From Paragordius varius (taxonomy: Eukaryota > Animalia > Nematomorpha), in the NCBI GenBank assembly GCA_964247055.1, contig OZ176053.1:2480001-2544000 (forward strand): DNA of 64,000 nt. The letters are read 5' to 3'. Shown here in pieces: positions 331 through 61,063 of the stretch; the stretch's first letter is position 1, and every line of letters begins with the position of its first letter. A program made the position numbers and the translations under genes. The notes beneath the pieces were generated by a model, which had not been told where the DNA came from, did no database searches, and worked only from the letters and a program-made list of their open reading frames with translations.

Positions 331-542
331 TCCTTAAAATTACATGAAACAGAGACCTATAACGTCACCCTATCAATTTTAAATATCTGTGCCAAAACCG
401 TTTTACTCAACATGTTTTTTTTAAAATAAGTGAAACCATAAATAAAAGGAGGCGCTCAAAAAAATAATTCGGAATCAAAACTTAAAACGGTTAAGTCTGA
501 TCCCTAGTGGATAGAGAGTATAATTATTAAAATCCAAATTAC

Positions 543-2345
543 CAAAACAAATTCCGTGTAATAATGACGAACCAAGAGGGACGCTTTAATCACTTCCTTA
601 CATTCTTTCATGAGTTGTTTGGCACTCAATACCGATACCTTAAGAGGTTTTTGTTCAAGCCTAATCCTTAACCATTGGTGGACAATTTCAATGGGTATTC
701 GAACGAGGAACAAATAGCAATTAACAAATGACACCAAGTTCATGGATAAAAATTCATTGCTATGGACACCGTATCGTTGGCAAACTAAATTATTGTGATG
801 CTTTGGTGCAGTTTGGGATGAAAGAGTGGTTGTTTCACTTTGACAACCATACTTAACATCTAGCATGGGTATAAAAGCATGGATAGAGGGGAAAATACAA
901 GTTTTTTGGGAGTTGCTTTCCTCAAGATAACTTTCATCAAGAGTTAGTGAACCAAGTTCCATGGAAGGGAGACATTGTGATTGTTTTGATCCACCAACAG
1001 AATTTGAGCAATAAAGATTGGAGGAAGGCGTTAGTGCAGAGGCAAGTTTCCTCAAAGGTAAATGCAATAAATTAATGAGTTGAAAAATTAGTTTTGCCAG
1101 TGTACCATCCCTAATGGCATTTTCAACGTAGGCCTTAAATAGGGTTTCGGACAAGGGGCGGTCAGATGTAAAATGGGCCGTATTAAAATCAACATTTTGA
1201 TCCCCGACATATGGGGAATCAAAGAGAGTGTTAAGATATGGCCAAACTTTTGGATTGGATATTTGAAAAATTTGACCTAAAGCATTTAGCTTATATGCAA
1301 TTATTCTATTCAAATTAACCCAAAGATTAAGAGTTTTTAGGCGAACGACAAATTTTTTGCTCTTGTATTTTGGGAAACGTGGTGAAATCCATTTATTATG
1401 TGGAAACAATGATTCAAATTTATAGATCGCTTCCAAAAATTCCAAAATTTTGACCTTATTCGAATGAATAGCTAAAAGATCAATGTGAATGGTTTGAAGG
1501 ATATTATGGAAACTTAAATCGAACATTTGGCTTCCTGGCATATGATGGAGACTATTAAAATCACACATTGGGCTCAATCGCAAATTACAACATTGGATAA
1601 TTATGGAAGAAAATTTAACTCTCAGCTGGCAGACATAATGATCCATTTGTGTTAAGGATCGGTCAAAAAACCATGCTTGTAATTCTAACCATATAATGTC
1701 CCAAACTTTATTTTTCCATGACTGTATGGCGATTGTTTGATTAGATACAGTAAAAGATTTGTTTGTTTTAACGGAATCAATAGAATTAATTAATTCTTTT
1801 AAAGAATTGTCTGGATCAGAATGTTGAATTAAGTGTTGTGAATCTTTAGGTTTGTATTTTGTAAATCGATTTTTCTCAACATGTGGGCGTCGTCTTAATG
1901 CTGATTGCCTTTCTTTGTCAAATATGTTTCCGCAAACTTCTTGTTTGCAAACGAATTTGGGAATTATGGGTGGCTCATAATGGTTGATTGGTACACTATC
2001 TAAACTTAAAAATGGTTTTTTATAAGTAATATAGCAATCTGGCCAAATCAAATCAATATCGTTTTCAAAATGTTTATCATCGTCTACGTAAAGTTTTAAG
2101 GTGGGCTTGCGTTTCTTCAATTTTTTATGCTTTGGGATTATGTTAAACGGCTCGTCTTTGCCAAATTCATCTAAAAGTGGTTTATAAGATATGATTTGTG
2201 GATTAATTTCGGTTTCAAAAATTTTATCAACCAACTTATTAGCAATTGTAGATGAATATATTGAAGCATTTTCAAAGAAAAGATTTAAATCGGTCGATGA
2301 CCAATTTACTAAATTTTCACAAAATTTCGCAAGCTGTGTATTCAT
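543..2345 (-). CDS. MAP3K4: MAP kinase kinase kinase 4 (MEKK4/Mekk1) N-terminal region; one large coding exon, gene continues beyond the left edge
   Basis: ORF 504..2360 contains IIWLELQAW, RLKTLNLWVNL, and FLVRIPIEIVHQWLRIRLEQKP...SAKQLMKECKEVIKASLLVRHYY, which I recognise as the MEKK4 N-terminal domain. Donor TTG|gtaatt puts the exon end at 543. The 5' end is either ATG 2345 or an acceptor (ctaat...tacacag|) with the exon starting at 2333. No kinase domain lies in the window. Confidence 0.88.
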
Positions 2346-2383
2346 AAGGTAATTAGCCACATGTTACGCTCCTTTTTAAATGA

Positions 2384-7651: not shown

Positions 7652-8276
7652 TATATACCATTTTCAAGAGTGTCCTTGAACACTTCAAGTTGGTCCTAGA
7701 ACATTTCAAGTTGGTCCTTGAACAGTACAAGTTGGTCCTTAAACATTTAAAGTTGGTCCTTTGACATTTTTGTTTTAACTTTTATTTATCAAATCGTACA
7801 TAATACATCTATTTTATTGTTTTAAACCTATTTTCTATTATTTAACATTTAAATCGATATCAACTTTTAATCTTTGAGAAACCGTATATCATTTAAAATA
7901 ATTTTGGATATTTATTTTTAACACGAAATGAAAAAATATATAAGTTTTCTTGGTTATTAATTAAAATTTTTCATTAAAAACATTTAAAATTCAATAATTT
8001 TGTTCAATTGAAAAAAATTAGTTTGAAACAAAAAATTGGTTTTTAAATTAAAATTTTTAAATGAATAAATATATAATAAATAAAGAAAATTAGGTTAATA
8101 AATAATAAAATAAATGCAAATATGGTTAAATCAAAATTTATAAATTTTAAGGACCAACTTGAAATGCTCAAGGACCAACTTGAAATGGGACAACTTGAAC
8201 TGTCAAGGACCAACTTGAATTGGTCAAGGACCAACTTGAAGTGTTCAAGGACACTCTTGGAGTGCAAATAATATAT
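7652..8276. mobile_element. MITE family B2: ATATACCATTT terminus with inverted arrays of a 21-bp repeat (CAAGTTGGTCCTTGAACATTT)
   Basis: About 5 units at 7670-7770 and the inverted array at about 8147-8260; the left terminus is identical to that of family B1. Confidence 0.75.
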
Positions 8277-43177: not shown

Positions 43178-46100
43178 ATGGATTGGATATTCAACAAAGG
43201 AGAAAATACACGGGTAATATATATTAATTAATTTTTAATATAAAATTGTATATGTGACAGTTGCATTTTCATTTAATTTAATAAACAATATAAATTAAAC
43301 TGAATGATAGCACAGAATTTGGTAAAATAAAAGGGAGACATTAATAATGAGAACTTTAGTTCAATACATTAATTGGTTTTATGGGGGGGGGTTTGAATTA
43401 AATGTTTTTAGTTTATTCATGCATTCATACATGTTAAATTTTAAACTCTTTTAAATCGCTGTAGTTTTTGATTAAAACAAATAATGCCTTATACTATAAC
43501 GTTGGAATCGTTGCTATTTGAAATTGATTAATTTTCAAATATGAAAAGTATTTCCAATAAAAGAATTATACGTTCGAAAAATTAAAACATTAGTCTAAAC
43601 ACCATTTAATTAATTGTTAAAAATAATTAATGAAAATGTATAAATCATCGGAAAATTTTAACCTTTTGAGATTTAGTAATTACAAATGATTATATTGGTA
43701 TTAATATTTTGAATGTGATTTCTGTTGAAGTGACTTATCTGCAGAGTTTGACATGGTGAAAGAATAGATATTTCACCTATAGTTCATTGTTAAATATCAA
43801 TGTATATATCATATTATCACTTCATTAACTTTCGTGATAGTTTTGTACCCTAGAGTCAATTTATATTCTCATTAACACTAGAAAATATAAGATATAATGG
43901 GCCGAATAAAATTATGAATTGTTTAGTACTCTTTTAACACTTGGATAAAACACATTCATTTCAGTCCTTCGATTTAAATTGAGGTAGTTAGATATCTCAG
44001 GCTTGTTTAATATTAAAAAATAAATTAAAAGCACAGCAAAAGTTTTTTGCGTTTAATATTTATAAACTGAAAAAAAAAATAAATTCATTCAAAAATACTT
44101 CATTATTCAGAGGTAATACCCAAAGTAAAAATATAACCAACATAATATGTGTGCATATGCTAAATATAAAAATGTTACAAAACACTTTTGTTTATAACAA
44201 TGTTAAATTTGATTTATAAATGTAAAAATTATAGGCTTAGAATAATGTGACCAGATATTTTGAACGCAGTAAATTATAACATACTTTGTTTTTACACCAT
44301 CGGTGTGGTATATTACACAGTTTCCACAAAATGAGAAATATACATATTTTTATAGGAAAATATCAGGGTATCATGGTTTTGGTTTTAACCTTTACGAGAT
44401 ATTTAAACCTTTGTGGTAGATGCTCCGTATAAAATTTTCAAGTGAGCAATCTTTTTCAGATAAATTCTTTGGTGAAAGCTAAATGCATTTTGAAAAATTT
44501 CACCAAAATATAACATAAACTACATATAAAACAAAAAAAATTTGCAAATTATAAATTTTTAGATGTGAGCTCTGAAAGTCCCAAATTTTTCGTTCTCTTA
44601 AAATAAACACGAAATTCCGACATGTGAAATAGTTTTAAATATATGCTAAATTTTGATATCAACTACATATATTTTTTAAAATTATATTTCAAAAATTTAA
44701 TTTTTTGCAATATTTTGTTGAGGCATACTTTATATTAATTTGAGCATGATGGAAACAATATAAACGGTTGAGGATTTAACACTTTATATATAATTTGATA
44801 ATGTGAAACCTCATTCGGAATTTTGATTAAAATATTCGTTCCCTAAATAAAAATTGTGTTTTTTACAAAAATTCACCAAAATTTGCAACCAAACAAACCT
44901 TTATATTATTCCGAATGTTTAGCATCATCGAATTATTTTAAAAAGAGTTTTATTAAATCTTAAAGCGTTATACCGTTTCCATCATGCTACAAAATCATCA
45001 GAAGTACACTTCAACAAATAATCTCAAATTTGTTTATAAAATAAAACTAATGAAAAAAATTATATCATACCTCCCATCTAATGAGTGAAAACGTAAAAAA
45101 CTCTTTATTTTTAAATACGAAAAAGAGGTTATTTCTAAATCATATGCATATAACGGGAATAACATTTTTCTTTATAATTTGCCGTTTGATAATTATAACA
45201 AAATATGAACTAAACTTGATAAGATATTTATTAAAATATTTTAAATGAATTTTGTTAATTTTAAATTTTGAGGCACGTTTTTTTGCTAGCCCAGAGTGAA
45301 AGATCCATTAGCCTGAATCTTAGGGTAAAATCCAAAGATTTATAGTTTCACCATTGCGCGAAAGGCTGCAATCATAAGTGGTTTGATCAATCCAATTTTA
45401 TGTATAATTGCAGGAATATTCAAATAGGCCAATCTTATTGTACCACAAAATGAACCATTACTTTTCAAATCATGCGGTTATATTTACAGGGGTTACTATA
45501 TCAAATTCTAAAATATTTTTTGAATAAATAAAAGATAATTAATATATATTCATAAATAATATTTTTTTTAATTTCAAAAAGCAGTACAAAAGTGGGCGCA
45601 GTACAGTCGCAGTTTTTCTTAAAATTCAGTACTGTACTGCCAAATTCCAATCAAAGTATGAAGCACATGATTAAAAAGTTTTTTTTATAAAAACTATAAT
45701 AAATTCTATAAATTTATGCGCCGCCATTTCGTTAAATAAAAGTAGATATATGTAAATTATGGTTAAAAATGTAATAACCTTTAAAGCCTTCAAGATACCT
45801 TTTCGCAGATGATATTTATTCAGCTGTTTCTAGCGTTTTGTGGCTATTACAATACTCTAAAATTTAAAACCGTAAAAGTATTATTAATATACCAGTTAAA
45901 AAATTAAATTTTTACCAAAACCCCTTTAAAACAATAGTTTTTTCTACAAAACGGACCCAAAAACAAGCAAATAAAAAGATAAAGAATAATATATTATTTT
46001 AACTCTTTTTGATTTGATATAATTATAATTTCTACTAATTAATACGTCAAAACATCATTTTTTCGATTCAAATTGGGGCATCTAAACACCCCAAACCATA

Positions 46101-48280
46101 TTTAAATTGATATTTTTAAAAAATAACTGAAAGAAACGGTTCTAATTTAAATTTATGCTCCTATCCTAATAAAAATTATATATCAAAATATCTAATAAAA
46201 TTTAAAAAAGTTTCGTATCAAACTACTTGGACCCCATTTTTATTTCCCAACATTTTTGCCAAATATCGTTTTTATTTATTCTAGGCCTAAAATTATATTT
46301 AATTATTAAAAATAATCACATTAAAATTGAAATAAATGATATTTTCACTATTTTTGTGTTTTGCTCATGCACAGATGTCATCTTGGCTAAATTTTTACCT
46401 TTCGGTTTTACCCCTCAGCAAATAATGTCAAGTATTTTTTAAGCAAGTAACTTTTGCCATGGTTTTAGTTTTTCCTTATTTTTAAAATTTTAAACAAGCC
46501 TGGGGTCTCAATTTAATACGAATGGTGTTATAAATAAGGTGCATAATTTCCTATTTTGATAAAACAATACAGGAATCGCACTTCATATATGTCTTCAGTC
46601 ATCTAACTACTTCTTAAGTAAATTTAATTTTAAAATTACAGATACAAAATTATGTAAATTTAGTTTAACACTTCATTATTAATTAAAGTTTTAACTATAG
46701 TTTTAGTGGTTTAAAATATAAGCTTACTAATCGTTTTAAATTAAAAATCAATAAAACCTATTTATAAACCTATTCATTCAAAAAAATTATTGCAATTACA
46801 CCTATAGTATCTAACCAATAAAATAATATCAGTGATCAACATATAAAACAGTAGTTTAAACGATATTTTTTATCTATTAATTGTTTAGCCTGATCCTAAA
46901 ACGCCACAAACTGTCATGGGGGATGCTATTATATCTGAAGTAATGAGATGCATGGAAATATGTTATAATGAAAGAAAAGCCAAATCTCAAAATGAACCCA
47001 CAAATGATAACGAAAATGGTAAAACATTGCAGTCATCACTTTTACCAAATTCTACAGCTTATGTCCCTGGAGATACATTAATACAATATCCCACATCATC
47101 CGCAAATAAAAACAACGATACAATTAGTGAAATGGAACATTATACTAATGGGTACAGAAAGAGTTCAGATGTCCCTGTCATCAATACACCTACAACAAAT
47201 GAACAACAAACAAATAGTAGCGCAACTTTAAACAACACGAGCGAAGATAAAAAAGAAAATGATAGCAATAGTAATAATTATCCAACACCCCGGGTAGATT
47301 ATTCGTGGTTAGCTAGACCGGGTTTACCTCGACGTTCCTCCATACAATCTCCTTTATCCATTGTTCAGGGCGAAGTAGAGGATCAAATCTTGGGGAGCGT
47401 GAGTGAAAGTGATCTTAAGGATCCTACCATAGCTTCTGAACTACCCTACATGACAGAGTTGGAGAGAACTGAACTGTATAATCTTGCCATCCAACTTGAA
47501 CCACGTGAATACGTTCGAACCGTTAAAATATTCCGTAAAAAGTTATCCGACATTGCAGCCGTAAAATCTGGTCGTCGATCGGGTTCAATCGCTTCTGTCA
47601 TAGGCTCAGAACTGGAACGATCCATACCAAATCTTAAATCTTATTCGGCCAATGATCCATTCATGAAAAAAGGAGGGAAGCAAGCAAAAACTGGAACAAC
47701 ACCTTCCTATCTGTCTCCCATGACCGCAGGGGCGGCCAAGACAGATAAGGATGAGGAAAGTAGTATTTCATCTTTATCCAACTCCTCTAATGCCTACTAT
47801 CCAGAGTATGATTGGCAATTACAACCACCTGAACAAGGTTCATCTATTCACGATATGGATACAACATCTTTTACAACGGGTATTGAGGATGACTTAAATT
47901 TTGATTTCCAAAACCCGGACCCATTAATAAAAGCGGATTTGTCCGTGTTTAAACCAAGAGAAATACCAAACATTATGAGACTTGCAATATATCGTGTCCT
48001 AGATATGCGGGATTTACATAAAGCTCAGACCCGTAAAGGCAGTTTTCATCGAAAAAGTTTTCACAACAAATTGACAACCAACACTTCCGCCAGTAACCTT
48101 GGAATAATTAGTAAAGATAATAAAATTTATCCTGCGCATATGGATTCTGAAAATAATAGCAAAAACCTAGCTAGACAAGATTCAAAACGGTTTTCCGAAA
48201 ATTTTCATCGAATAACTGTAAGCGATAAAGCCAGATCCCAAGGCTCCAGACGTGCTACAGATTTTCATTTACCAAGTTAG
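43178..48280 (+). CDS. RD3-family (retinal degeneration 3-like) protein with long insertions; join(43178..43213,46889..48280), about 475 aa
   Basis: Micro-exon MDWIFNKGENTR|gtaat splices in phase 0 to tttag|PDPKTPQTVMGDAIISEV. The product carries RD3-like blocks in the correct order: KTPQTVMGDAIISEVM, RVDYSWLA, TELERTELYNLAIQLEPREYVRTVKIFRKKL, PREIPNIMRLAIYRVL. Family assignment is from recall of human RD3. Confidence 0.78.
43934..44280 (+). mobile_element. MITE family A, partial copy
   Basis: TTAACACTTGGATAAAACACATTCATTTCAGTCCTTCGATTT left end; it decays to the right. Confidence 0.7.
44360..45010. repeat. Old dispersed repeat family C (unclassified DNA-transposon-like); other pieces at about 4150-4400, 10690-11340, 14440-14660, 15170-15860
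   Basis: Shared motifs ATCATGGTTTTGGTTTTA, TTTGGTGAAAGCTA, (G/T)GAGCTC(T/C)(G/A)AAAGT and CATGATGGAAA. Ends not resolved. Confidence 0.55.
46060..46530 (-). mobile_element. MITE family A, diverged reverse copy
   Basis: TCGATTCAAATTGGGGCATCTAAACACCCC, with body similarity (AAATTTTTACCTTTCGGTTTTA, GCCATGGTTT, AAACAAGCCTGGGGT). Confidence 0.7.
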
Positions 48281-48817: not shown

Positions 48818-48891
48818 GGTAAAAAACTGTGGACAAACTATATTCGTTCTATTACATAGTTTTTCGGACTCTACTAATATCCACAAAAATA

Positions 48892-50489
48892 ATGTATGAT
48901 TTTTGGTTTCTTTATATGTTTTGTTGTATGACGGTGTTACTTAACACGTATTGTGTAGCTGATCAACAATCTCAAACATCGCCGCTTTTTGTGAGCCCAA
49001 CATCGTTTGATGATTCCACCATAGCTAAACTCAATAATTTGATTAAAGTATTATGGATCCGAAAATTGAACAATGCAATGACAGGTGCGATAAATGCCAA
49101 ATCCTTAAGTGCTAACACTAAAAGTGCCAATAATGTAATAAACACTGTGCCCGACACCCAACATGTAGCTTTACCCACTAATTTGGAATCGTTGATAAAG
49201 GGACGGTATTTAAATACTAAAATTCCACCCAAAATAACCGTTGGTAATCCTATACAAGGCGGCAATGTCATTGGACAACAATTTGCTGGTTTCCCACCAG
49301 TACTTAGAAATGTCAGGAATACTCGTGATTTGGATGCGAGCGAAGATTTAGACTCACCAACAGGGGATAGTAATTTGATAAACCTCAATTCATTAGTAAA
49401 TAATCCGTCTGTTTTGTTACAAAAACCTCCTCCAAGCTTAAGTTTTGGAAAAACTCTTGATAAAACTCTAAATGGCCCCTTAGCACCAGATTTTAATGTA
49501 GGCCCTTGGAGTAAAAATCCATTGGTTGACCCAAAACTTTCCCAGAACGTTTTGCCTAACACAATAAATCCGTTTGGTCAGGGTCCAATACCTAATATAC
49601 CTTTATCACCGCCTCAAGGAGGAACGGGCCTGATTCCAGGTAGTTATTTTACCATGTAACATAAATACATATTGACGATCTTTTTTTAAATTTGTTAGGA
49701 CTTATCAACCCATTGCCACCAACAATCGGATTCCCAAGCACAGCAAGCAAAACGCTGGTAGATGCAAATTTGCCAGTTCCGCCCTCCTTACCATCCTTAG
49801 ATAGCAACTTTGTTAATCAATACGTAGTGCCAAATCTTAATCCAATCTATCAACAGTTGTATAGACAAATACAAGCTATCCCGACCGAGAATACGGTTAC
49901 AAGAACCGAAGTTACACCCCAACAAAACATTATATCTCGTGTGGTTCAAGTACCTCATACCCAAATAGTTACTGAATGTCGACCCGAACAATATCACTAC
50001 CAGTATCAAAAGTTGGAGCTTGAACCGATCCTTAAAAAGATTCAAGAACTTATCCCCATCCCATTCGTGTACAAACTTAAAACTTTGCAACCACAGATCC
50101 GTGAATACGTTTACCAAATCATGGAACCGGAAATCATTAAAAATTTGATTAATTATTACACGTTACAGGCATCCATTAAAACTATCCAAGGGTATGAATT
50201 GACACCCATCGAAAAAACTATCGTAACGCTCAAAGATGAAACGTATACGACACAAGTTAATACGCTTAAACCAGTAATCCAAAACATATTGGTTAAGGGT
50301 GAGTCCCTACTTCCCTACAACATTCAAATCAATACTTTGAACCCGGTTCCTGGAATCACTCAAGTCCCTGGTATTCAAATTGTACCCCAAATTCAAAAGC
50401 AGCTGGGCGTCAAGGTTCAACCCTTCTATTATGCCGTGCCGGCTCCACCAACGCCCTATCAAAATCCGTATCAACCCATTAAATCATAA
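48892..50489 (+). CDS. Unrecognised secreted Pro/Val/Gln/Thr-rich protein; join(48892..49639,49699..50489), about 512 aa
   Basis: Two adjacent long ORFs are joined in frame by a 59-nt GT-AG intron (CCAG|gtagtt...tgttag|GACTT). The N-terminus MYDFWFLYMFCCMTVLLNTYCVA looks like a signal peptide. A TATA box lies upstream and AATAAA is at 50607. Confidence 0.8.
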
Positions 50490-50773: not shown

Positions 50774-53700
50774 TCATTTATCGACTAATGATAATTGCAA
50801 AGCTTTATGATAATCATCATTTAGGGCTAAATTTTGGATATTCATTTCATATTCTAAGCGTGATAATTGAAGTACTCTTTCTAATTCTTCATCATCCTAT
50901 GAATGTTAATATTTTTAAAAATTTAATTAAAATTTATACGGACAAAACGTAAATTTATAAAACACAAATATTTTTTTGATTTTTGTTTTTTTTTGTAATA
51001 TAACTTACTCATTGTTATGCATTACAAAGTATGATATAGAGATGTGAGCTAACTGATAATATATTAAATTATGTATTTTACAATTATAATTCCATAAAAA
51101 TAGAAAATTCAAAAAATATGGTTGACATTATTAAAAAATGTTTTTTACGTTTTGTCATATTATGAATAAATTTGTATACTTCAGTAGGTAATGATTTTGT
51201 ATTCCGCAAATCACAATTCTTGTTTTGAGTTTTGGTTCCAAGCGCTTCCCATACAGTTAACTTTTCATTTTCAGTACCCTGTTTATCATCATCAAAGTTA
51301 TTTGACGATTGCATAGAACCTTAATTAGAAAGAAAATTATTGTCAATATAAATATATACTAAAAAGTTGTAATATGAAAAGTAAAAAGATATTTTTGGAT
51401 AAGGTTTTCTTTAATCAGTGGTATTCAGCAAAAAAAATTCAAAAGGTCCAATTTTTTATTCTTCAGAAGCCATGATACCAATAGGTATATCATAATTATT
51501 ACTCTAAAAAATTATTTCCAATAAATAAATCAGGGCCATAAAAAAGCACTTTTAGGGCCGCGGTTTAAGTATACCACTGGTCTCCCTTAAGATAAAACCT
51601 TATGCTTTCTACTAAAAAATAAATTTGTAAAAATTTATTTTGCGCCTGATCAAAATTAATAAAGTACGTACCAATATTAGTGTTGGAAGCTGAAAGGTTG
51701 CTTGGGTGGTAAGGAAATCCTTGTTGACTACTTGTGGAATCATCTATAAGAAATAAATGAAAAAAAAATGATTGTCTTAAAAAAAATAAATTTTGTTCAC
51801 CGTGTCGATATGATTAACAATGACTACAATTTTTACAAAAAATAATTTAAACTTTTTATATAATATTTTCATATGTAATAAAAAAAGGTGAGTAACGATA
51901 TAAATTTTTATGGTATAAGAATTCAAAGTTGTAAAATTTCGATAACTTTTCTGTCATAGTGTCTCAATTTAATGTTAACACCATAAAAACTAATTTAATA
52001 TAAAATTTAATTGACTATAACTGCTTTATATAAATGCATTTTGAAGCGGTCAAACCCCGTTTATATTTCGTTACAATTTAATTGCAAACAATATAATTTA
52101 ATAATTTATGTTATTCCGCATAATTCGACATTTTTAATCAATCATAAGATGGAATAAATTTATATTTAAAAATTATATTTGTATACTTGAAATGTCCGTA
52201 TATCCGGGTGGTATGTTAAATATAGAAGAATCAATTATACAGGAGGAACTATTTTGAGATGTATGAGCAGCATCGGATTGAATATGATAAACACCATATA
52301 CACTTGTATCCTTGGCACAAATGTTTCCAAACGTTATCCGTGCATTCAAAACATGAAATAATGGAATTTCTATTACCCAATAAAAAATTTTTTATAACGT
52401 TGTTAATAAAATTGTTTAAAAATATGACATACCCTAAAATGGATATCTAACTTATTTGAAATTAGTATAATTTTTTAAAAGAAAAATGAGACTATATTTT
52501 ACCAATTTTAACTGGGAAACCCGGTGGTAATTGCAAAGTAATAAACTCCTTAAGCTTGATGATGTGAGGGTTACTTTTTGGCATCAAATCAATGATTGGT
52601 ATAATCTAAATATATAAGCACATTCTAACATATTTTATATAAAACCTTTAAAAACGAAAATAAGCGCTCCCTTTAAATTTTTGCCTAACTTTTATTTTGC
52701 ACAATTTTTGTATCATTTATTTCGTGACGACTGTTGATAACTGCAGATTATCATTTAAACTTTTTTGGCCATACAAAATATGAAAAATTTTATAGTAGGT
52801 ATGAAAATATCTGTTTAATATAATAGTTAAACTATCCATTTATTATATACAAAAAACGGACAAAAACCATTAAAATATTTATAAATTAAAGCACGCACAT
52901 CCTAATAAATTATATTATTAATGGATACACACTGCTTTTTTGCAATCTAGCTATCATATTTAATGATTATAGTATAAACAATAACTAAAATGTAATGTAA
53001 CACCCTTATAATATCTTTTCTTCTTTAGACGAAAAAATTAAAGCAAAAAATTTAAAAACGGTAACATGCAATAATATAAAAATCAAAAAAAATTCTGTGC
53101 CAAAAATATACGGTGTATAGCAGATGAAAGTTGTAATTTTTAATTAACAACAAGCTTATAATTAAATATTTTTTTGGTATTTGTATGGCGGACCTTATTG
53201 ATAAATCTAATTATGACTTAAAGTGTTCAAAACAGAAGGTGAGGTATAATATTAATGTTAGAACAGCGTCAATAAAAGGAAAAGAAAGGTAAAAGAACCA
53301 AAGATATGAGATAATAATTTTTACTCAAACTAAATATCTATAATAACGTATCAAAAAAGTTACATGAGACATATAATTTTATTTAGACTTAACATACAAA
53401 GTTTACATTTAAAATCAACCTGGTCTTGTAGAGAAAGTGGACACTCTTCGGAAAGCCAAATGGTAGCTCTAAATTTTCGAGATTTATTAACAATTTCTTT
53501 CTTAAGTCGACCTATGTGCCTTTTCGTATGCCTTATTTTATCACTTTTTAAACTATGTTGACCATTATCATTAACCATAAACGATTGAGGGTGATTATTA
53601 GCATTGAACATTGATTTAAGTTTCGTTTTATAATCGGTCGATTTAACCTCATTACTCGGATGATAGTTACTGTTTGAGTTTATAAAATTTTGATTTTGTC

Positions 53701-56700
53701 CCCGTGGGCATGGATTAGTGTTGAACGATGAAACCATTTCATAATTTGCAATGTATTGTTCGAATGTAAGATTATATGGATTGTATATGGGATCAATTTC
53801 ATTTTTTACAGCAGTCTCATTAGTTGTTGTGATGGTATGATTGGTATCAACGAGGTATTCATCACAATCAATATGGCATTTATTATTAACTGAATCATCA
53901 CAGTTTAAAGCCGTAATTTGAGAGTTATTTGTCAAATTTACCGCTTCAGAGTCATAATTTTTGGTTGAGTTTTCTGAATTAACACAAGGAAAGGTATCAC
54001 AAGTATCTACAAAAACTTCGCCATCATCATCATTATCTATTAAAAAAGTAAAAAAAATAATTTAAACATTAACAACTAAGGATTAAATTCATTTCAGTAA
54101 GTTTGATGTTAATTTTTTTTGAAACCCAGTAAAAGGGGCGAATAATATAATTAGTTAATACTCAAAACTTTTGTATACCGTTAAAAATAATAGAAAATAT
54201 TTTATTTAAAAATTTGTTGCACAGCTTCTTTATATGGTTAATATTTACAAAAAGCAGTTTAGAAACATTTTAAAAAAAGATACGGAAATATTTCTACGGT
54301 ATACAACAAACTATACATTTCAAAAACAGGGATGGGTTAAATTCTTAATTAAATAATGGTAATTACTAAGCAATATATGGTTTCTATATAATTAAATTGC
54401 AGTATGTATTTCAATGGTTGCTTATTTCACACTTTAGTTCGGCAATTTGTAACACAGTAGTGTATGGAAAAAAAGAAAGGAATCAATTGTGTAGTTGCAA
54501 ATTGTCCAACTAGAGTGTGAGATAAGCAACCATTAAATGCATACTGTAAATGGCCATTTCCATCAATAAAATTACTTTATTTTTTTATATATATACCTGA
54601 TTAAAATACTTAAGATACTAACTGCCCCTATCACCTATACTATAAAGCCAAGATATAAAATTAATTATATCTATCCCTAAATGTAGTTTTTTTATTTTTT
54701 TTGAATATCAGATTAACGCAAAAATATATAGATTATCGTGCTTAAAAATCCCTAAATATTAACATATTATTTAAAATCATTAGATTGTTATGAAGATCTT
54801 ATTAAACTAACCAGTTAGTTCTACAAAATTTAGTAAGCCAAAAATAAATCACAAGAAAAATTAAATAATAAAAAAATTTAAATTTTATTAACATACTTTC
54901 TTCTGAATCATTAAATAGTAATGTTTGAACGTTATTTTCATTCTTATTTTGTTGCAAAGATCTTTTTATCGAATCATTGGAATTCTTAATATTCAGCGCA
55001 TTTTGAATTAAATCATTTTCTATACTATCATCGTTTGTTGTACTACCCATTGAAAGGGACAAAAATGAATCAATTGAAGATTTTGAATTGATTTTATTTT
55101 GTTCACATACTGTATATACATATATATTACAGTCATGTATCCTTTATTTTATCAAATTATTTTCTTTCGTTAAATGGGTATAAATATTTGGTAAAGAATG
55201 GAAAAAACAAGAGCTCTATGGTAGTAACAATATCATATTCATCAAAAAAGTAAAAGAATTACCATAGAGCTCTTGTTTTTTTCATTCTTTACCAAATATG
55301 TATAAAAATAAATATTTGATAAAATAAAGGATACATGACTGTAAATTGAATTAAATTATAATGAAAAGTAACTATAGCACGGCACGCTTTATAATAAACT
55401 AATAGTTTTCAAAATTTATAATGTTAGATATCGTCATTTTTTAGCATTTCAATATTTTCGCTTTTTTTTAAAATAAGCTTAATTAAGTTGCGTGTAATGT
55501 ATCTCAAAAAATGTATTTCATAATGAGTCAAACATGTTTTTATTTGTTTAGGTAAATATCCGTAGGATAATTATTTAATATATTTATATTTTGTATTGGA
55601 AAAAAGAGTTTGTTATCATTTAAACAATGAGCAAGTTTTAAAAAAATTATGAGTGATGGTTGACTTCATAAAATACAGTATGCATTTAAATGGTTGCTTA
55701 TTCCACACTATAGTAGGCCAATTTTCAACACAGGAGTGTATGGATAAAAGAAAAAAAATAATTCTTTATTTATTTTTCCATACATTAGTGTGTTGCAAAT
55801 TACCCAACTATAGTGTGGAACACGCAACCATTATTTTGTAAATTCATCTAATTGGTGATTTTAAAGAAACAATCAACGCAAAAATTCAAATAAGTATTAA
55901 TGATTAGGTTCGATTCTTTCTAAAAAATTTCTATCATAAAAGATATAAATAAGTTACTATCGTTATGAGAACTGGCAGAATTTATATGATTTTCCTCGTG
56001 ATTTGCACAAACGGTTGTTGTAGTATCTAAAACAGTTTTAAACCCAAAAAGTGTATTAAGTATCCCCATGTCATATATAAAGCCTGTATTTTGTCTTAAT
56101 CGCTGACGAGCGCTTTCATCTAAATGTTCACATCGTGTTTTAGTAATGAGTTCGGCATTTAAAATATCGTAAACCTGAATTTGATAAAAAAAATGTTTGA
56201 TAGAAAGAAAAAGTTAAAAATTAGCAAAAAAATGATTGAAAAAATAAGTAAAAAGTACAGTAAAAATGGAAATTATACGGACAAAACGTAAAAATATAAA
56301 GGCAAATTTTTTCAAAAGTCAACCACACTTTTTTAAACCTTGATTATTCTTAGATTAAGTATTTAATTGACACTGTAAAATATATGATTGATTATGTTAC
56401 CAATATATATCCCTCTTTCAGACTTTGCAATTTTAAACAAGTTATAATTAAAAAAAATCGAGATTAAAAAAGCTGGTTGTTGTCTTTTGGAAAAATTTGT
56501 CTTTGTATTTTTGCGTTTTGTCCGTATAATACCAATTTTTACTGTAAAAAAATTAATATGTAAATTTGTTTGTTGTGAAACAAAATCATAATCTAAGCGA
56601 GTTTTGCATCGGTGGAAAAAAATGTAATGTTGGGCAATCTGCAACACAGTAGTGTCAGGAAAAAATAACAAAATGTTGAATAAACAATTATTTCTTTTTT

Positions 56701-57112
56701 TTCTATACACTACTGAGTTGCAAATTTCCCAACTTCGAAGCAACCATTAAAATGTTAATTATATGGTTCAAAAAATATGGTTGTCTCTCTTATATTTAAT
56801 TTCAATTTTCACTTTAATTTATGGTATAAAATGTAAAAAAAAATTTATTTTGGCAATCAGAAAATAATATTATCCGCAAATAATATATATAATATAATAT
56901 ATATATATATATATATATTGTGTGTATCAATAAACATTTATATATATCATAACGATATGTTATATTAATAACAATTAAAGATATGATTTTTAGTATAATA
57001 GGTATAAAAATTTACTGTAATCTAACTAACTAATTAATATATCCTTAAAAGTTTTTTTGATAAACCTTTTACATTTATATTTTTCACTTCAATTCCACCC
57101 CAATATATTATT

Positions 57113-57152
<40 letters not shown>

Positions 57153-59173
57153 AAACTAAACCATCAATATATATAATCTTTGTTTTTGGGGTAAATTACC
57201 ATTTTTCCTTGCCTTTAGACTTCAATTTATAATTATAAACCTAATAATAGCATATTTAAATCTTGTGTATATTAAGCACAATTTTATAAACCAAAACTAA
57301 GCACAACTAATGATCATATGTATAAAATAGATGTGAAACAAAATAAAACCAAAAATAAATTTAATTTTAAGATAAATTAGCCTAAAAATATATATTTATA
57401 GAAAAATTAAATTGTTTTTTATTTATAAATCACCAACAAAAACTTTGATTTGCAATTTTAGAGTAAAAATTGGAATTATACGGATAAGTATGAAAAAGAG
57501 ATGTATATTGATAACACAATCAACGTTATATTTTACAGTGGTATAAATATATACCATTTATAATACAAATTCACCCTTGAACAATTCAAATCCACCCTAA
57601 AAATAAATTATGTGTTTTTGAACTAATATAACTCATTAGTAGTATGAAATACATTGTGGCATAGTTATTTATTTTTTCAGTATAAATTTAATACAAAATT
57701 TTTATTTTTTAAAAATATATAGAAATATTGGTAATTTTTATTCTTAAAAAACATATATTTTAGTTAAGGGTGAATTTGAATTGTAAATGGTATATCTTAT
57801 ATAAAAAAAATAGGTTATGCAAAAAGTATGATTGTTTTATGAAAAATATGTCTTTAGATTTTTACAATTTGTCTTGTAATATAATTAATAAATAATAATT
57901 TGAAAGAATAGTTGTCTTAATTTCCTCTAATTAAAGAGATATAATACTATTTCAATTTTTTAAAAATTAAAATTATTATAAAAAATACCTTGCATTTGTA
58001 ACCATTGATGGATTCCGTTCGATCATCTTTCCATATAAGCCCAGATTTATTTCTTTATTATAAAAGTAATAAATGAATAAATAGATTTTAACTTTTATAT
58101 AATAGGGTAACAAGTTTTGATTGTGATAACAATATCTAATAATTATTAAGCTTTGAAATACTTAAAATTTGTTTAAAAAATAATTTATTACATTTTACAA
58201 TTAAAAATAGATTTTTAAAAAATTTCAAGGTCATAGGTCGTCACTAAAAAAACGGCAATTAAAATCTATGTTTAGCTAAATAAAAAATACAAGAGCAGAG
58301 TTAATTGTTTGAAATTTCTCGCGGACCATAAAAATATTTCGGAGGGCTGAATGCGAACCGCGTGTTAGACCTCCCCTGGTTTAAAATATTACATTTTTTG
58401 TTATAACCAAACTAAAAACATATCTACCTGACAAATTCAATGTTATCAACATCGAGATAAGCCGTGACTAGTGGATTTTTTAACCGTTGTTTTATATAGG
58501 AAGGGTGTGGTTTCATAAGTTCCAGCTCAATCGTTTCCAAAGGGAGTCCCCGTTCATAGACTTCAGTTTTGAAAGTTTTATCGTCATGATTAAGCTCGAG
58601 GAATTTGGTTCCTGCCCCTATTATAAAAAAATCGAAATCAAAAAATAAGGTTGTAAAAAAAGTACATTTTAATTCTGTATCAAGAGTTTTATAATTTAGT
58701 CGGGGTTTAAAATAAAATTTTTCAATACCAAGAATTAAAATTTAATAACCGTTTTTATGATTTCGAGGTTTTTATGCTCCATATTTTTGGAAAAAACGGC
58801 TTAAAACCTAAAAAAATTTGGTGATGCGGTTCTAAACATTTTTTTAACAAAGACAATTTTTATCATAATTCCATTGTGTACCTTGTCAAATGAAATTGAT
58901 TCAATTTAATATTTGATTTTACAAGGAAGGAAAAAGTCACAAAACAAAGTATTGATAATAATTTTGGAAAATATAAGATATAAGGTTTTATTTAAGATTC
59001 GATTGAAGAAAAAAATTAGATTTTTAAAAAAACATGAGTTTATGAAAGTGCCATTTCAAAACAAATTAAAACCAATCTTTTCGTTTATAATAATAAAGAA
59101 AATTACCATTAATACCTCAAATAATTTTTTTAAAAAAAATGTGATTATAGCCTTCCTTGTCTTGCCTTTTACC

Positions 59174-59208
<35 letters not shown>

Positions 59209-61063
59209 ATTTGCTATATTTAATCAAATAGAGTCGTATATAATTAAACATTTTTATAATTGAACATTAAGTATATATACAATATTCTAATCGTTTAATA
59301 CAACTTATGATTCAAATATTTCGATCAATTTCACATTAAAATTATAAGAAATACAGTATCGGGCATAAAATAATATTAGTCCATATGAAAATAAAAAATG
59401 TTTTGTGTATATACAACTAGGCTTGCTTTTTTAAAAAAAACATTTTTTTATTCTTTTATGGACTAATATTGTTTTATGCCATACGCTACTGTATAACATG
59501 AAATATATTACTCATGCTATAAAAGATCTGTATTTACAAGTTAACTTAAATAATTTTTTAATGCTAATACAATGAATCCTTTTTCATTTTTAAAAATTTC
59601 GCCAATGATAAAATTATTATTTTTTGAATTATAAGAAAAGATCAAAAAAATAGTTATAAAAATATTTTAAATTTTTAATTTTTTCAAGAACAGTATTTTA
59701 AATAAACTTAAATAAAAATGGTATAAAAATCAATTAAACTATATATTATTACCAGAACCGTGAAAGATATAGGATTTATTTCCTCGACTAAAACCTTGGT
59801 CATGGAAATCAAGTAAGGTGGAATCAATTCTAACATGAGGGCCTAATAAATTCAAATTAGATAATCATAAACTATTTATCAAATTTTGGGGTAGTTTTTA
59901 GCCCCCAGGGCATTTACTATAATCGGATATTGGGACAAATTTTAAATAAAAATTCTGGGGCCATTATATTAATGATTTTTGAAGTGGAAAAATGAAAATA
60001 AATTCTTTTGATAGCTAAAATTAAGATGTGAAAAAGTGGTGGTCAACATGCGGCGAGAAATTCTATGCGGCCAGGGAAAAATTTGAATTCATAATTTGCA
60101 AAAATATGTTGACAAAATATTGCCTAAATTGATATTCCTCAGAGATTTTTTAAATAAGTCTATCGAAATAGCAAGATGGAGAATTTGCATTGGATTAGTT
60201 ATATTATATATTTAATCCATATATATTGCGAATGCGGCTCGGAAAGCTGTTTTGGACACCCGTAGCTTAAAATAAAATGAATTAACGTTAAAATTTATAA
60301 TGATCATATTTTAATAGTAATTTTTCGATATTTGATTATAAAAATATTTAGGGGCTTTCTAAATCTTACACACTGAAGCGTTCGGAAAATAAAAGATATA
60401 TAAAATAAAGTGTAATGATTTATCGTATTTAAGCACAAAGCACCTATATATAATTTTTAAGGGCGTAAAACTATGATAAAATGTGTCTTAAAAAGTCAAA
60501 CAATATTGAATGTATATTGTACCTGATTTCCAAATTTTACAGGTATCACTTGGACAAAATCGGGAAACAAAGGGAACTATGACATGTTAGGTAATTAAAT
60601 TTACTTAGACTAGAAAATTCCCATTTCATTTCAAAATAAAAATCAGGAGCGTCATTAATGGCTTTTAAGATGCGTGGTATCGTTTCCATTTCTTTGACAT
60701 AACGCTGATAATAACGATATTGCATTAATAGTTGCAAGAGTTTTGGATCACCTATACTGATTGCTTCATGTATGACTATTAAAATATAAAAATTATAAAT
60801 ATACTAGACCAACCATCTTTACTAAGCGTATCAACAACACTAGCTCCAGCCTCTAATAAAATTTTAACGGAATCATATCGGTTGAGTAAAACGGCCAATT
60901 CAAGCGGTGTTTGACCAAACTGATTAGATAAATCGATATTGCACTATGGAAATTATAAAATGTTTTAAACCTCATTTTTGAGTAATTTTTGCAATAACTT
61001 ATTATCATTATTCCAAACGGCGAAATGTAAAGGGTATTGGGCAAAAACTTTGGAAGGGATCAT
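50774..61063 (-). CDS. ANKRD13: Ankyrin repeat domain-containing protein 13 family (ANK repeats, GPCR-chaperone-like domain, C-terminal UIMs), 15 exons, 822 aa
   Basis: Exons on the - strand (2469 nt, phases close): 61063-60971, 60943-60805, 60775-60605, 60576-60523, 59842-59753, 58617-58428, 58052-57989, 56174-55958, 55109-54897, 54036-53420, 52605-52503, 52369-52187, 51743-51672, 51319-51180, 50896-50774. Motifs: [98 protein letters not shown], and the UIM-like ELERVLQLSRLE and YHKALQLSLVDK. The paralog (A/B/D) is not assignable. Confidence 0.93.
54400..54546. mobile_element. MITE family E
   Basis: CAGTATGTATTTCAATGGTTGCTTATTTCACAC ... GTGTGAGATAAGCAACCATTAAATGCATACTG|TA. Confidence 0.8.
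55130..55341. mobile_element. TA-flanked CAGTC MITE, near-perfect hairpin of about 212 bp
   Basis: Perfect 28-bp TIR CAGTCATGTATCCTTTATTTTATCAAAT plus an inner IR of about 40 bp (TGGTAAAGAATG...AACAAGAGCTCTATGGTA). Confidence 0.85.
55676..55833. mobile_element. MITE family E (right tip eroded); a further partial copy is at about 56626-56755
   Basis: TA|CAGTATGCATTTAAATGGTTGCTTATTCCACACTATAGT ... ACTATAGTGTGGAACACGCAACCATT. Confidence 0.78.
56258..56544. mobile_element. MITE family D, about 287 bp
   Basis: TA|CAGTAAAAATGGAAATTATACGGACAAAACG ... CGTTTTGTCCGTATAATACCAATTTTTACTG|TA. Single-TIR relics also occur near 24835-25125, 40930-40990 and 50930. Confidence 0.85.
57114..57150. repeat. (TA)n microsatellite; similar tracts at about 14398, 17843, 20858, 22495, 23188, 25725, 28710, 42650, 50612, 56898 and 59178
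   Basis: Read directly. Confidence 0.9.
57548..57795. mobile_element. MITE family B1, short copy
   Basis: TATATACCATTTATAATACAAATTCACCC ... GGGTGAATTTGAATTGTAAATGGTATAT. Confidence 0.85.
59354..59491. mobile_element. TA-flanked CAGTA MITE, about 138 bp
   Basis: TA|CAGTA..GGCATAAAATAATATTAGTCCATA ... TATGGACTAATATTGTTTTATGCC..TACTG|TA. Confidence 0.75.

Follow-up and report, generated by a model that had tools for sequence, protein, structure and literature searches.

How short an intron an animal can splice is the question raised by an ANKRD13 gene on the minus strand of the window, the 64,000-nt stretch of DNA analysed here. Animal introns below 30 nt were long regarded as annotation errors, and a 2026 survey of 51 animal genomes, in which hairworms are not mentioned, found them only in the myxobolids and Dicyema, highly reduced animals with compact genomes (PMC13644364). 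A first-pass annotation of the window proposed that the 5' end of this gene holds three consecutive introns of 27, 29 and 28 nt, below the usual animal minimum and coexisting with large introns filled with transposable elements, perhaps as a separate mini-intron class that would imply an unusually permissive spliceosome. Here we ask whether the three segments are genuine spliceosomal introns, how they came to be so short and how they might be removed.

Three GT-AG segments interrupt the 5' end of ANKRD13

The coordinates, lengths and GT-AG ends of the three segments all proved correct (Table 1), and so did the annotated junctions, KNE/CNID in phase 0 and GWS/I and EFSSL/I in phase 1 (the slash marks the junction). 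Left unspliced, the 5' region of ANKRD13 has no continuous reading frame: the 27-nt segment, said to contain an in-frame stop, carries three of them, and the 29- and 28-nt segments both shift the frame, as had been claimed, and lead it into stops. Exon-by-exon alignment with six homologues shows that removing the three segments is the only set of cuts that yields a gap-free match to ANKRD13 proteins, since the other frame-keeping GT/GC-AG pairs each delete 2-25 residues, mostly conserved ones. Within the long introns of this gene, GT stands at 3.8% and AG at 3.1% of positions; under a rough uniform null, the chance that three inserts would carry both a GT and an AG end is ~2e-9, or ~5e-9 if three equivalent placements of intron 1 are allowed. 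A further GT-AG segment of 23 nt (61070-61048), noticed by eye and beginning 7 nt before the ATG, was not accepted as an intron: cutting it out would take the start codon with it, and a stop closes the frame upstream.

The remainder of the gene is intact. None of the 14 modelled exons contains a stop, and their phases agree; exons 9, 13 and 14, which fall in poorly conserved parts, and the 3' end are less certain. Membership of the ANKRD13 family follows from the N-terminal ankyrin repeats together with the ANKRD13_C domain (PF11904), found with Pfam in a downstream exon. The ANKRD13_C region also holds a long low-complexity insert (exons 8-10). Gordionus has an expansion there too (996 aa, against ~620 aa in other animals), and the two cannot be aligned with each other.

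Table 1 Features of the window (positions in nt; strand relative to the window)
Feature	Position	Strand	Description
ANKRD13 exon 1	60971..61063	-	93 nt, ATG at 61063, first ankyrin repeat; Ank_5 E 0.009
Mini-intron 1	60944..60970	-	27 nt, phase 0, GT-AG, three in-frame stops
ANKRD13 exon 2	60805..60943	-	139 nt, ankyrin repeats; Ank E 5e-5
Mini-intron 2	60776..60804	-	29 nt, phase 1, GT-AG, 7% GC
ANKRD13 exon 3	60605..60775	-	171 nt
Mini-intron 3	60577..60604	-	28 nt, phase 1, GT-AG
ANKRD13 exon 4	60523..60576	-	54 nt
ANKRD13 intron 4	59843..60522	-	680 nt, first long intron
ANKRD13 exons 5-14	51180..59842	-	with nine introns of 133-1,814 nt; stop-free, phases consistent
Low-complexity insert	53420-56174	-	Asn/Ser/Asp-rich
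MITE-like element	54410-54537		inverted repeats, in ANKRD13 intron
MITE-like element	55127-55344		as above
MITE-like element	55689-55832		as above
MITE-like element	56256-56546		as above
MITE-like element	57546-57798		as above
MITE-like element	59362-59480		as above
MEKK4 N-terminal region	504-2360	-	one exon of ~1.8 kb
Facing arrays	~7680-8240		two arrays of a ~20-nt unit
EFR3	17073 to ~41880	+	first introns 185, 337 and 512 nt
RD3-like gene	43178-48280	+	first intron 43214-46888, 3,675 nt
Secreted-type protein gene	48829-50489	+	Pro/Gln/Ile-rich; one intron, 49640-49698, 59 nt

The segments lie at intron sites common to distant animals

Intron positions and phases were taken from six full-length homologues mapped exactly onto their genomic loci; exons were searched singly, with the joined gene model left out, and one hairworm genome, that of Gordionus, served for comparison. 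Exon 3 alone found as its best match an ANKRD13D-like protein of Gordionus sp. m RMFG-2023 (XP_065314536/7; 73% identity, E 6e-20), the next match reaching at most 58%. The first-pass annotation had called for a comparison of intron positions with other animal ANKRD13 genes: all three sites, with their phases, are common to Xenia (a coral), Ptychodera (an acorn worm) and Gordionus, and sites 2 and 3 also to Anneissia. The introns found there measure 220, 148, 5,744 and 7,847 nt at site 1 (phase 0; Gordionus, Xenia, Ptychodera and Varroa), 8,138, 72, 378 and 14,134 nt at site 2 (phase 1; Gordionus, Xenia, Anneissia and Ptychodera), and 144, 293, 690 and 5,106 nt at site 3 (phase 1; the same four animals). 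The exons of the window fit the alignment between these conserved sites without gaps, and the chance that three random inserts would fall on the homologues' intron sites within the first 457 coding nt is ~2.5e-7 under a rough uniform null.

In all five outgroups with an intron at any of these sites it measures at least 72 nt, so the simplest history is that the introns shrank once the lineage had parted from Gordionus. The ancestral introns would thus have shrunk by deletion to 27-29 nt in the source lineage, a direction of change read from the same five outgroups. An earlier shrinkage with subsequent re-expansion in Gordionus would be an alternative history, and not the simplest one.

The exon lengths also equal those of Gordionus (139; 171 = 125+46; 54; 90; 190; 103 nt), exon 3 of the window corresponding to Gordionus exons 3 and 4 (125+46 nt) and exon 4 having the same length as Gordionus exon 5. 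This equality indicates that an ancestral intron before APDF was precisely lost in the window. Its site (60650-60651, in exon 3) still holds an intron in Gordionus, Xenia, Anneissia and Ptychodera, and lies between mini-introns 2 and 3, which places shrinkage and loss on the same 5' block. The site of intron 4, after WKS, is occupied in Gordionus alone among the six homologues (143 nt) and is empty in the other five, making it a candidate hairworm-specific gain.

Several lines of comparison point to the origin of the DNA. For seven of the nine exons tested Gordionus is the top match, alone or tied; conserved blocks of ANKRD13 are 60-88% identical to it, and a W-to-L change in WEFSSL is common to the window and Gordionus and absent from almost all other matches. 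Both also have the same gene order, with EFR3, an RD3-like gene, a secreted-type protein gene and, on the other strand, ANKRD13. From the closest proteins, the shared derived residues and intron, and this gene order, we infer that the window comes from a nematomorph, and one other than Gordionus sp. m. The Gordionus ANKRD13D-like gene, the orthologue by best match and gene order, is alike in its intron sites, in the W-to-L change and in the extra WKS intron; it is unlike in carrying introns of 220, 8,138 and 144 nt at the three sites, in that the shortest of its 15 introns measures 55 nt, in showing no 5' polarity, and in keeping the APDF intron.

Short and long introns stand in one gene

The 13 ANKRD13 introns of the window measure 27, 29, 28, 680, 1,135, 375, 1,814, 848, 860, 814, 133, 443 and 352 nt in order, and the first three are the three shortest (P = 0.0035, post hoc). 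The corresponding series in Gordionus (220, 8,138, 134, 144, 143, 60, 275, 259 nt and so on) has no 5' polarity. Moreover, the next four orthologous introns are longer in the window than in Gordionus (680 versus 143, 1,135 versus 60, 375 versus 275 and 1,814 versus 259 nt). Longer introns downstream and the missing polarity in Gordionus together argue for local shrinkage rather than compaction. Introns below 30 nt make up three of the 18 modelled in the window, and the annotated lower bound of 59 nt for all others holds for every modelled one, the extremes being the introns of the secreted-type protein gene (shortest) and the RD3-like gene (longest) in Table 1. At the level of the window, therefore, a median below 30 nt in a compact genome is not observed, and introns below 30 nt at conserved positions are.

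Read depth at the mini-introns is that of single-copy DNA, and parts of introns 5 and 7 reach depths of hundreds to tens of thousands; these parts are high-copy repeats. Inverted-repeat pairs typical of MITEs occur in introns 5, 7, 8 and 9, so that mini-introns do stand beside long, repeat-holding introns in one gene, as had been proposed. In other runs, the depth over the MITE-like element near 57550-57800 is thousands-fold. A strict rule by which all 5' introns are tiny was rejected, the first introns of EFR3 and the RD3-like gene being long.

Public reads across the three sites

Six public runs, drawn from three studies, contain the stretch. In X5 and X6, which come from two studies other than that of the best-matching runs, DNA contigs cross introns 1-3 with no other letters and no gaps, and their spans (60302-60727, 60823-61061 and 60746-61047) together cover all three mini-introns. 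Mini-intron 1 is contained in X5 record 7 and X6 record 15, mini-intron 2 in X6 record 15 and mini-intron 3 in X5 record 6. Identical contigs from two other studies mean that the mini-introns are not assembly errors.

None of the public runs that carry this DNA is recorded as RNA, and no RNA of this genotype was found among them. Two RNA runs (X7 and X9) under the same species label as the best DNA runs have one short match each to ANKRD13, of 40-43 nt at ~90% identity (60605-60647 and 60605-60644; four differences). The X7 contig departs from the window at 60605, precisely where intron 3 has its donor; the letters beyond, translated by eye, stay in frame and read I-P-L-L-S-K-F-C-P-S, the equivalent of exon 4, and the loose end on the other side reads P-K-I-L-E-A-I-H-A-A, also by eye. 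With only short matches at ~90% identity, X7 and X9 derive from a diverged hairworm or a paralogue, and the X7 sequence represents a third ANKRD13 of hairworm type beside those of the window and Gordionus. What the X7 RNA demonstrates is an unbroken mRNA frame at site 3 in a relative, and not the excision of the window's 28 letters. Retained, unspliced forms may be common, as in microsporidia. A search for further hairworm ANKRD13 fragments found none, and a metagenome scan with exon 3 gave no match. That X7 and X9 share a species label with runs X1-X4 and have a clearly diverged ANKRD13 makes cryptic or mislabelled taxa likely, which matters for RNA claimed to be of the same species; mislabelled hairworm runs are on record (10.64898/2026.02.03.703548).

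Splice signals and rival readings

Donors and acceptors of the mini-introns resemble those of the long introns, with GTA or GTT at the 5' end and TAG at the 3' end. Each mini-intron closes with ATAG and nearly lacks a pyrimidine tract, resembling the reduced signals of myxobolids and Dicyema (PMC13644364). Branch-like motifs are found in mini-intron 1 (TAAT, with the A at +18, or -10) and mini-intron 3 (CTAAC, A at +18, or -11), and a TAAY is missing from the corresponding place in mini-intron 2; such a motif arises in 25-36% of shuffles and is not significant. The annotation had also drawn an NMD argument from the in-frame stop in the intron whose length is a multiple of three. This argument is uninformative: selection through NMD is not indicated, because 70% of shuffles of the AT-rich intron 1 contain such a stop. 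A search against Rfam gave no match in the window and hence no snRNA there.

Taken together, the GT-AG ends, the frame restored without gaps, and the position and phase held in common with introns of the orthologues are those of U2-type introns. It is highly probable, in our view, that all three are true introns of the major (U2) type, standing at ancestral sites in a functional ANKRD13 gene, shrunk to 27-29 nt and removed by an ordinary spliceosome. The annotated claim that introns below the usual animal minimum occur here is thus very probably right, given the homologues' sites and the independent contigs.

Could the introns be real but longer, using nearby alternative sites in a protein that has lost a few residues? 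Frame-keeping GT-AG pairs do exist (an acceptor at 60920 giving 51 nt for intron 1; 38, 41, 47 or 50 nt for intron 2; a donor at 60610 giving 34 nt for intron 3), and at 34-51 nt they would come nearer to the small introns known from animals. However, these longer introns would remove residues that align gap-free to Gordionus and other animals (CNIDLSNQ, GWS, IHEA, SSL) and would shift the junction off the ancestral site, and only the short model matches the exon lengths of Gordionus, leaving the longer forms very unlikely. Even less probable is that the segments arose through assembly error or as insertions that disabled a pseudogene: the unspliced segments bring stops and frameshifts, and matching RNA is missing among the public runs, yet the contigs of two other studies refute an assembly error, the GT-AG ends and the ancestral positions speak against it, and the remaining exons are free of stops, with 60-88% identity to Gordionus in conserved blocks. 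Introns of the IRE1/XBP1 type, 23-26 nt long, are cut from stem-loops and ligated by tRNA ligase. The mini-introns resemble XBP1/HAC1-type introns in size alone; CNG/CNG loops on stem-loops are absent from them, the junctions have no stable folds (z 0.58, -0.11, 1.15), and the U12-type signature (RTATCCTT donor, TCCTTAAC branch site) is not present either. With GT-AG ends at the spliceosomal intron sites of other animals, non-spliceosomal removal and U12-type splicing are both barely credible.

A dedicated mini-intron pathway, with an altered spliceosome or a cap-linked cofactor and separate from the pathway of the long introns, deserves somewhat more weight but is still unlikely. The gap from 29 to 59 nt among the intron sizes of the window and the placement of the three shortest introns at the head of the gene would fit it, and Stentor, with introns of 15-16 nt, has altered branching factors (PMC9505925). 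Against this stand the donors and acceptors, similar to those found in the long introns; the starts of EFR3 and the RD3-like gene, where the first introns (185 and 3,675 nt) are long despite lying near the start codon; and the myxobolids, which splice introns of 22-27 nt with apparently canonical U2 snRNA and U2AF, so that conserved factors suffice there (PMC13644364).

Proposed mechanism and relation to known short introns

In the favoured reading, an ordinary spliceosome would remove the mini-introns by intron definition, using a minimal GT donor and almost no pyrimidine tract. The branch A would lie near +18, ~10 nt before the AG, as two of the three introns suggest, and the lariat loop of ~18 nt would be tight. 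A smaller loop of 10 nt has been proposed for Stentor (PMC9505925). As for the 5' clustering, there is about an even chance that it reflects the purging of repeat insertions near the promoter, a 28-nt target that is rarely hit, and a deletion bias down to the size floor of the spliceosome. The cap-binding complex, which favours the binding of U1 to donors close to the cap (PMC4889658), possibly helps as well by supporting 5' splice sites. More tentatively, and with odds well short of even, one lineage within the hairworms might splice in a position-dependent manner, with cap-near introns squeezed to 20-30 nt under cap-assisted or specialised intron definition and downstream introns growing by transposons. 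If so, this would be the first animal with both extremes, and Gordionus, a close relative without the trait, could be compared with it gene by gene.

Among animals, the closest parallels are the myxobolids (Henneguya, Thelohanellus, Myxobolus) and Dicyema japonicum, parasitic animals with GT-AG introns below 30 nt at conserved animal sites, donors of about GTa, little pyrimidine tract and short introns that adjoin each other (PMC13644364). They differ in having compact genomes, median introns of 22-27 nt and long-read RNA proof (PMC13644364), whereas the evidence for the present genotype is DNA. In the window, the same ANKRD13 gene also holds ten longer introns (133-1,814 nt) with repeats, and the lineage is an ecdysozoan one. 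Stentor (15-16 nt, PMC9505925) and the microsporidia likewise require a very short lariat loop (~18 nt from donor to candidate branch A here), but they are not animals and have almost only tiny introns. Schistosoma mansoni offers a further comparison. Its small 5' introns are reportedly ~26-40 nt long. According to the published account (PMC3254664), S. mansoni is similar in that small introns cluster at gene 5' ends, where standard transcript assembly overlooks them, and in being a parasite whose genome is large and rich in repeats; it belongs to a different phylum.

A literature search, largely outside subscription journals, found no report of mini-introns in hairworms, and two hairworm genome papers do not contain the word 'intron'. 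The hairworm is likely a third independent animal origin of sub-30-nt introns. Arising in an ecdysozoan with a repeat-rich genome, it would separate intron miniaturisation from genome compaction. With orthologous introns of 144-8,138 nt in Gordionus, it becomes possible to date the change inside a single phylum and to set the two spliceosomes side by side, so that what fixes the minimum intron size is open to direct test. A gene finder that accepts no intron below 30-40 nt would cut such 5' ends short, and gene loss reported for the phylum could be overstated as a result.

Neighbouring genes and elements in the window

The first coding exon of EFR3 runs uninterrupted for 185 nt, its first intron following 185 nt after the ATG, and no mini-intron was seen at its 5' end. 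The MEKK4 N-terminal region has no 5' introns; a homologue search with it, restricted in length and therefore of little weight, gave no match. The RD3-like gene is the orthologue of Gordionus LOC135923846 (30% identity); its first intron begins 36 nt after the ATG and measures 8,129 nt in Gordionus, and its 1.4-kb second exon is without two later Gordionus introns. The secreted-type protein has a Gordionus counterpart of 471 aa in a single ORF, 52% identical in the C-terminal half; it matches no Pfam family and is possibly a hairworm-specific structural protein. Elsewhere in the window, the two facing arrays of a ~20-nt unit, recognised by eye, are probably the ends of a foldback-type element.
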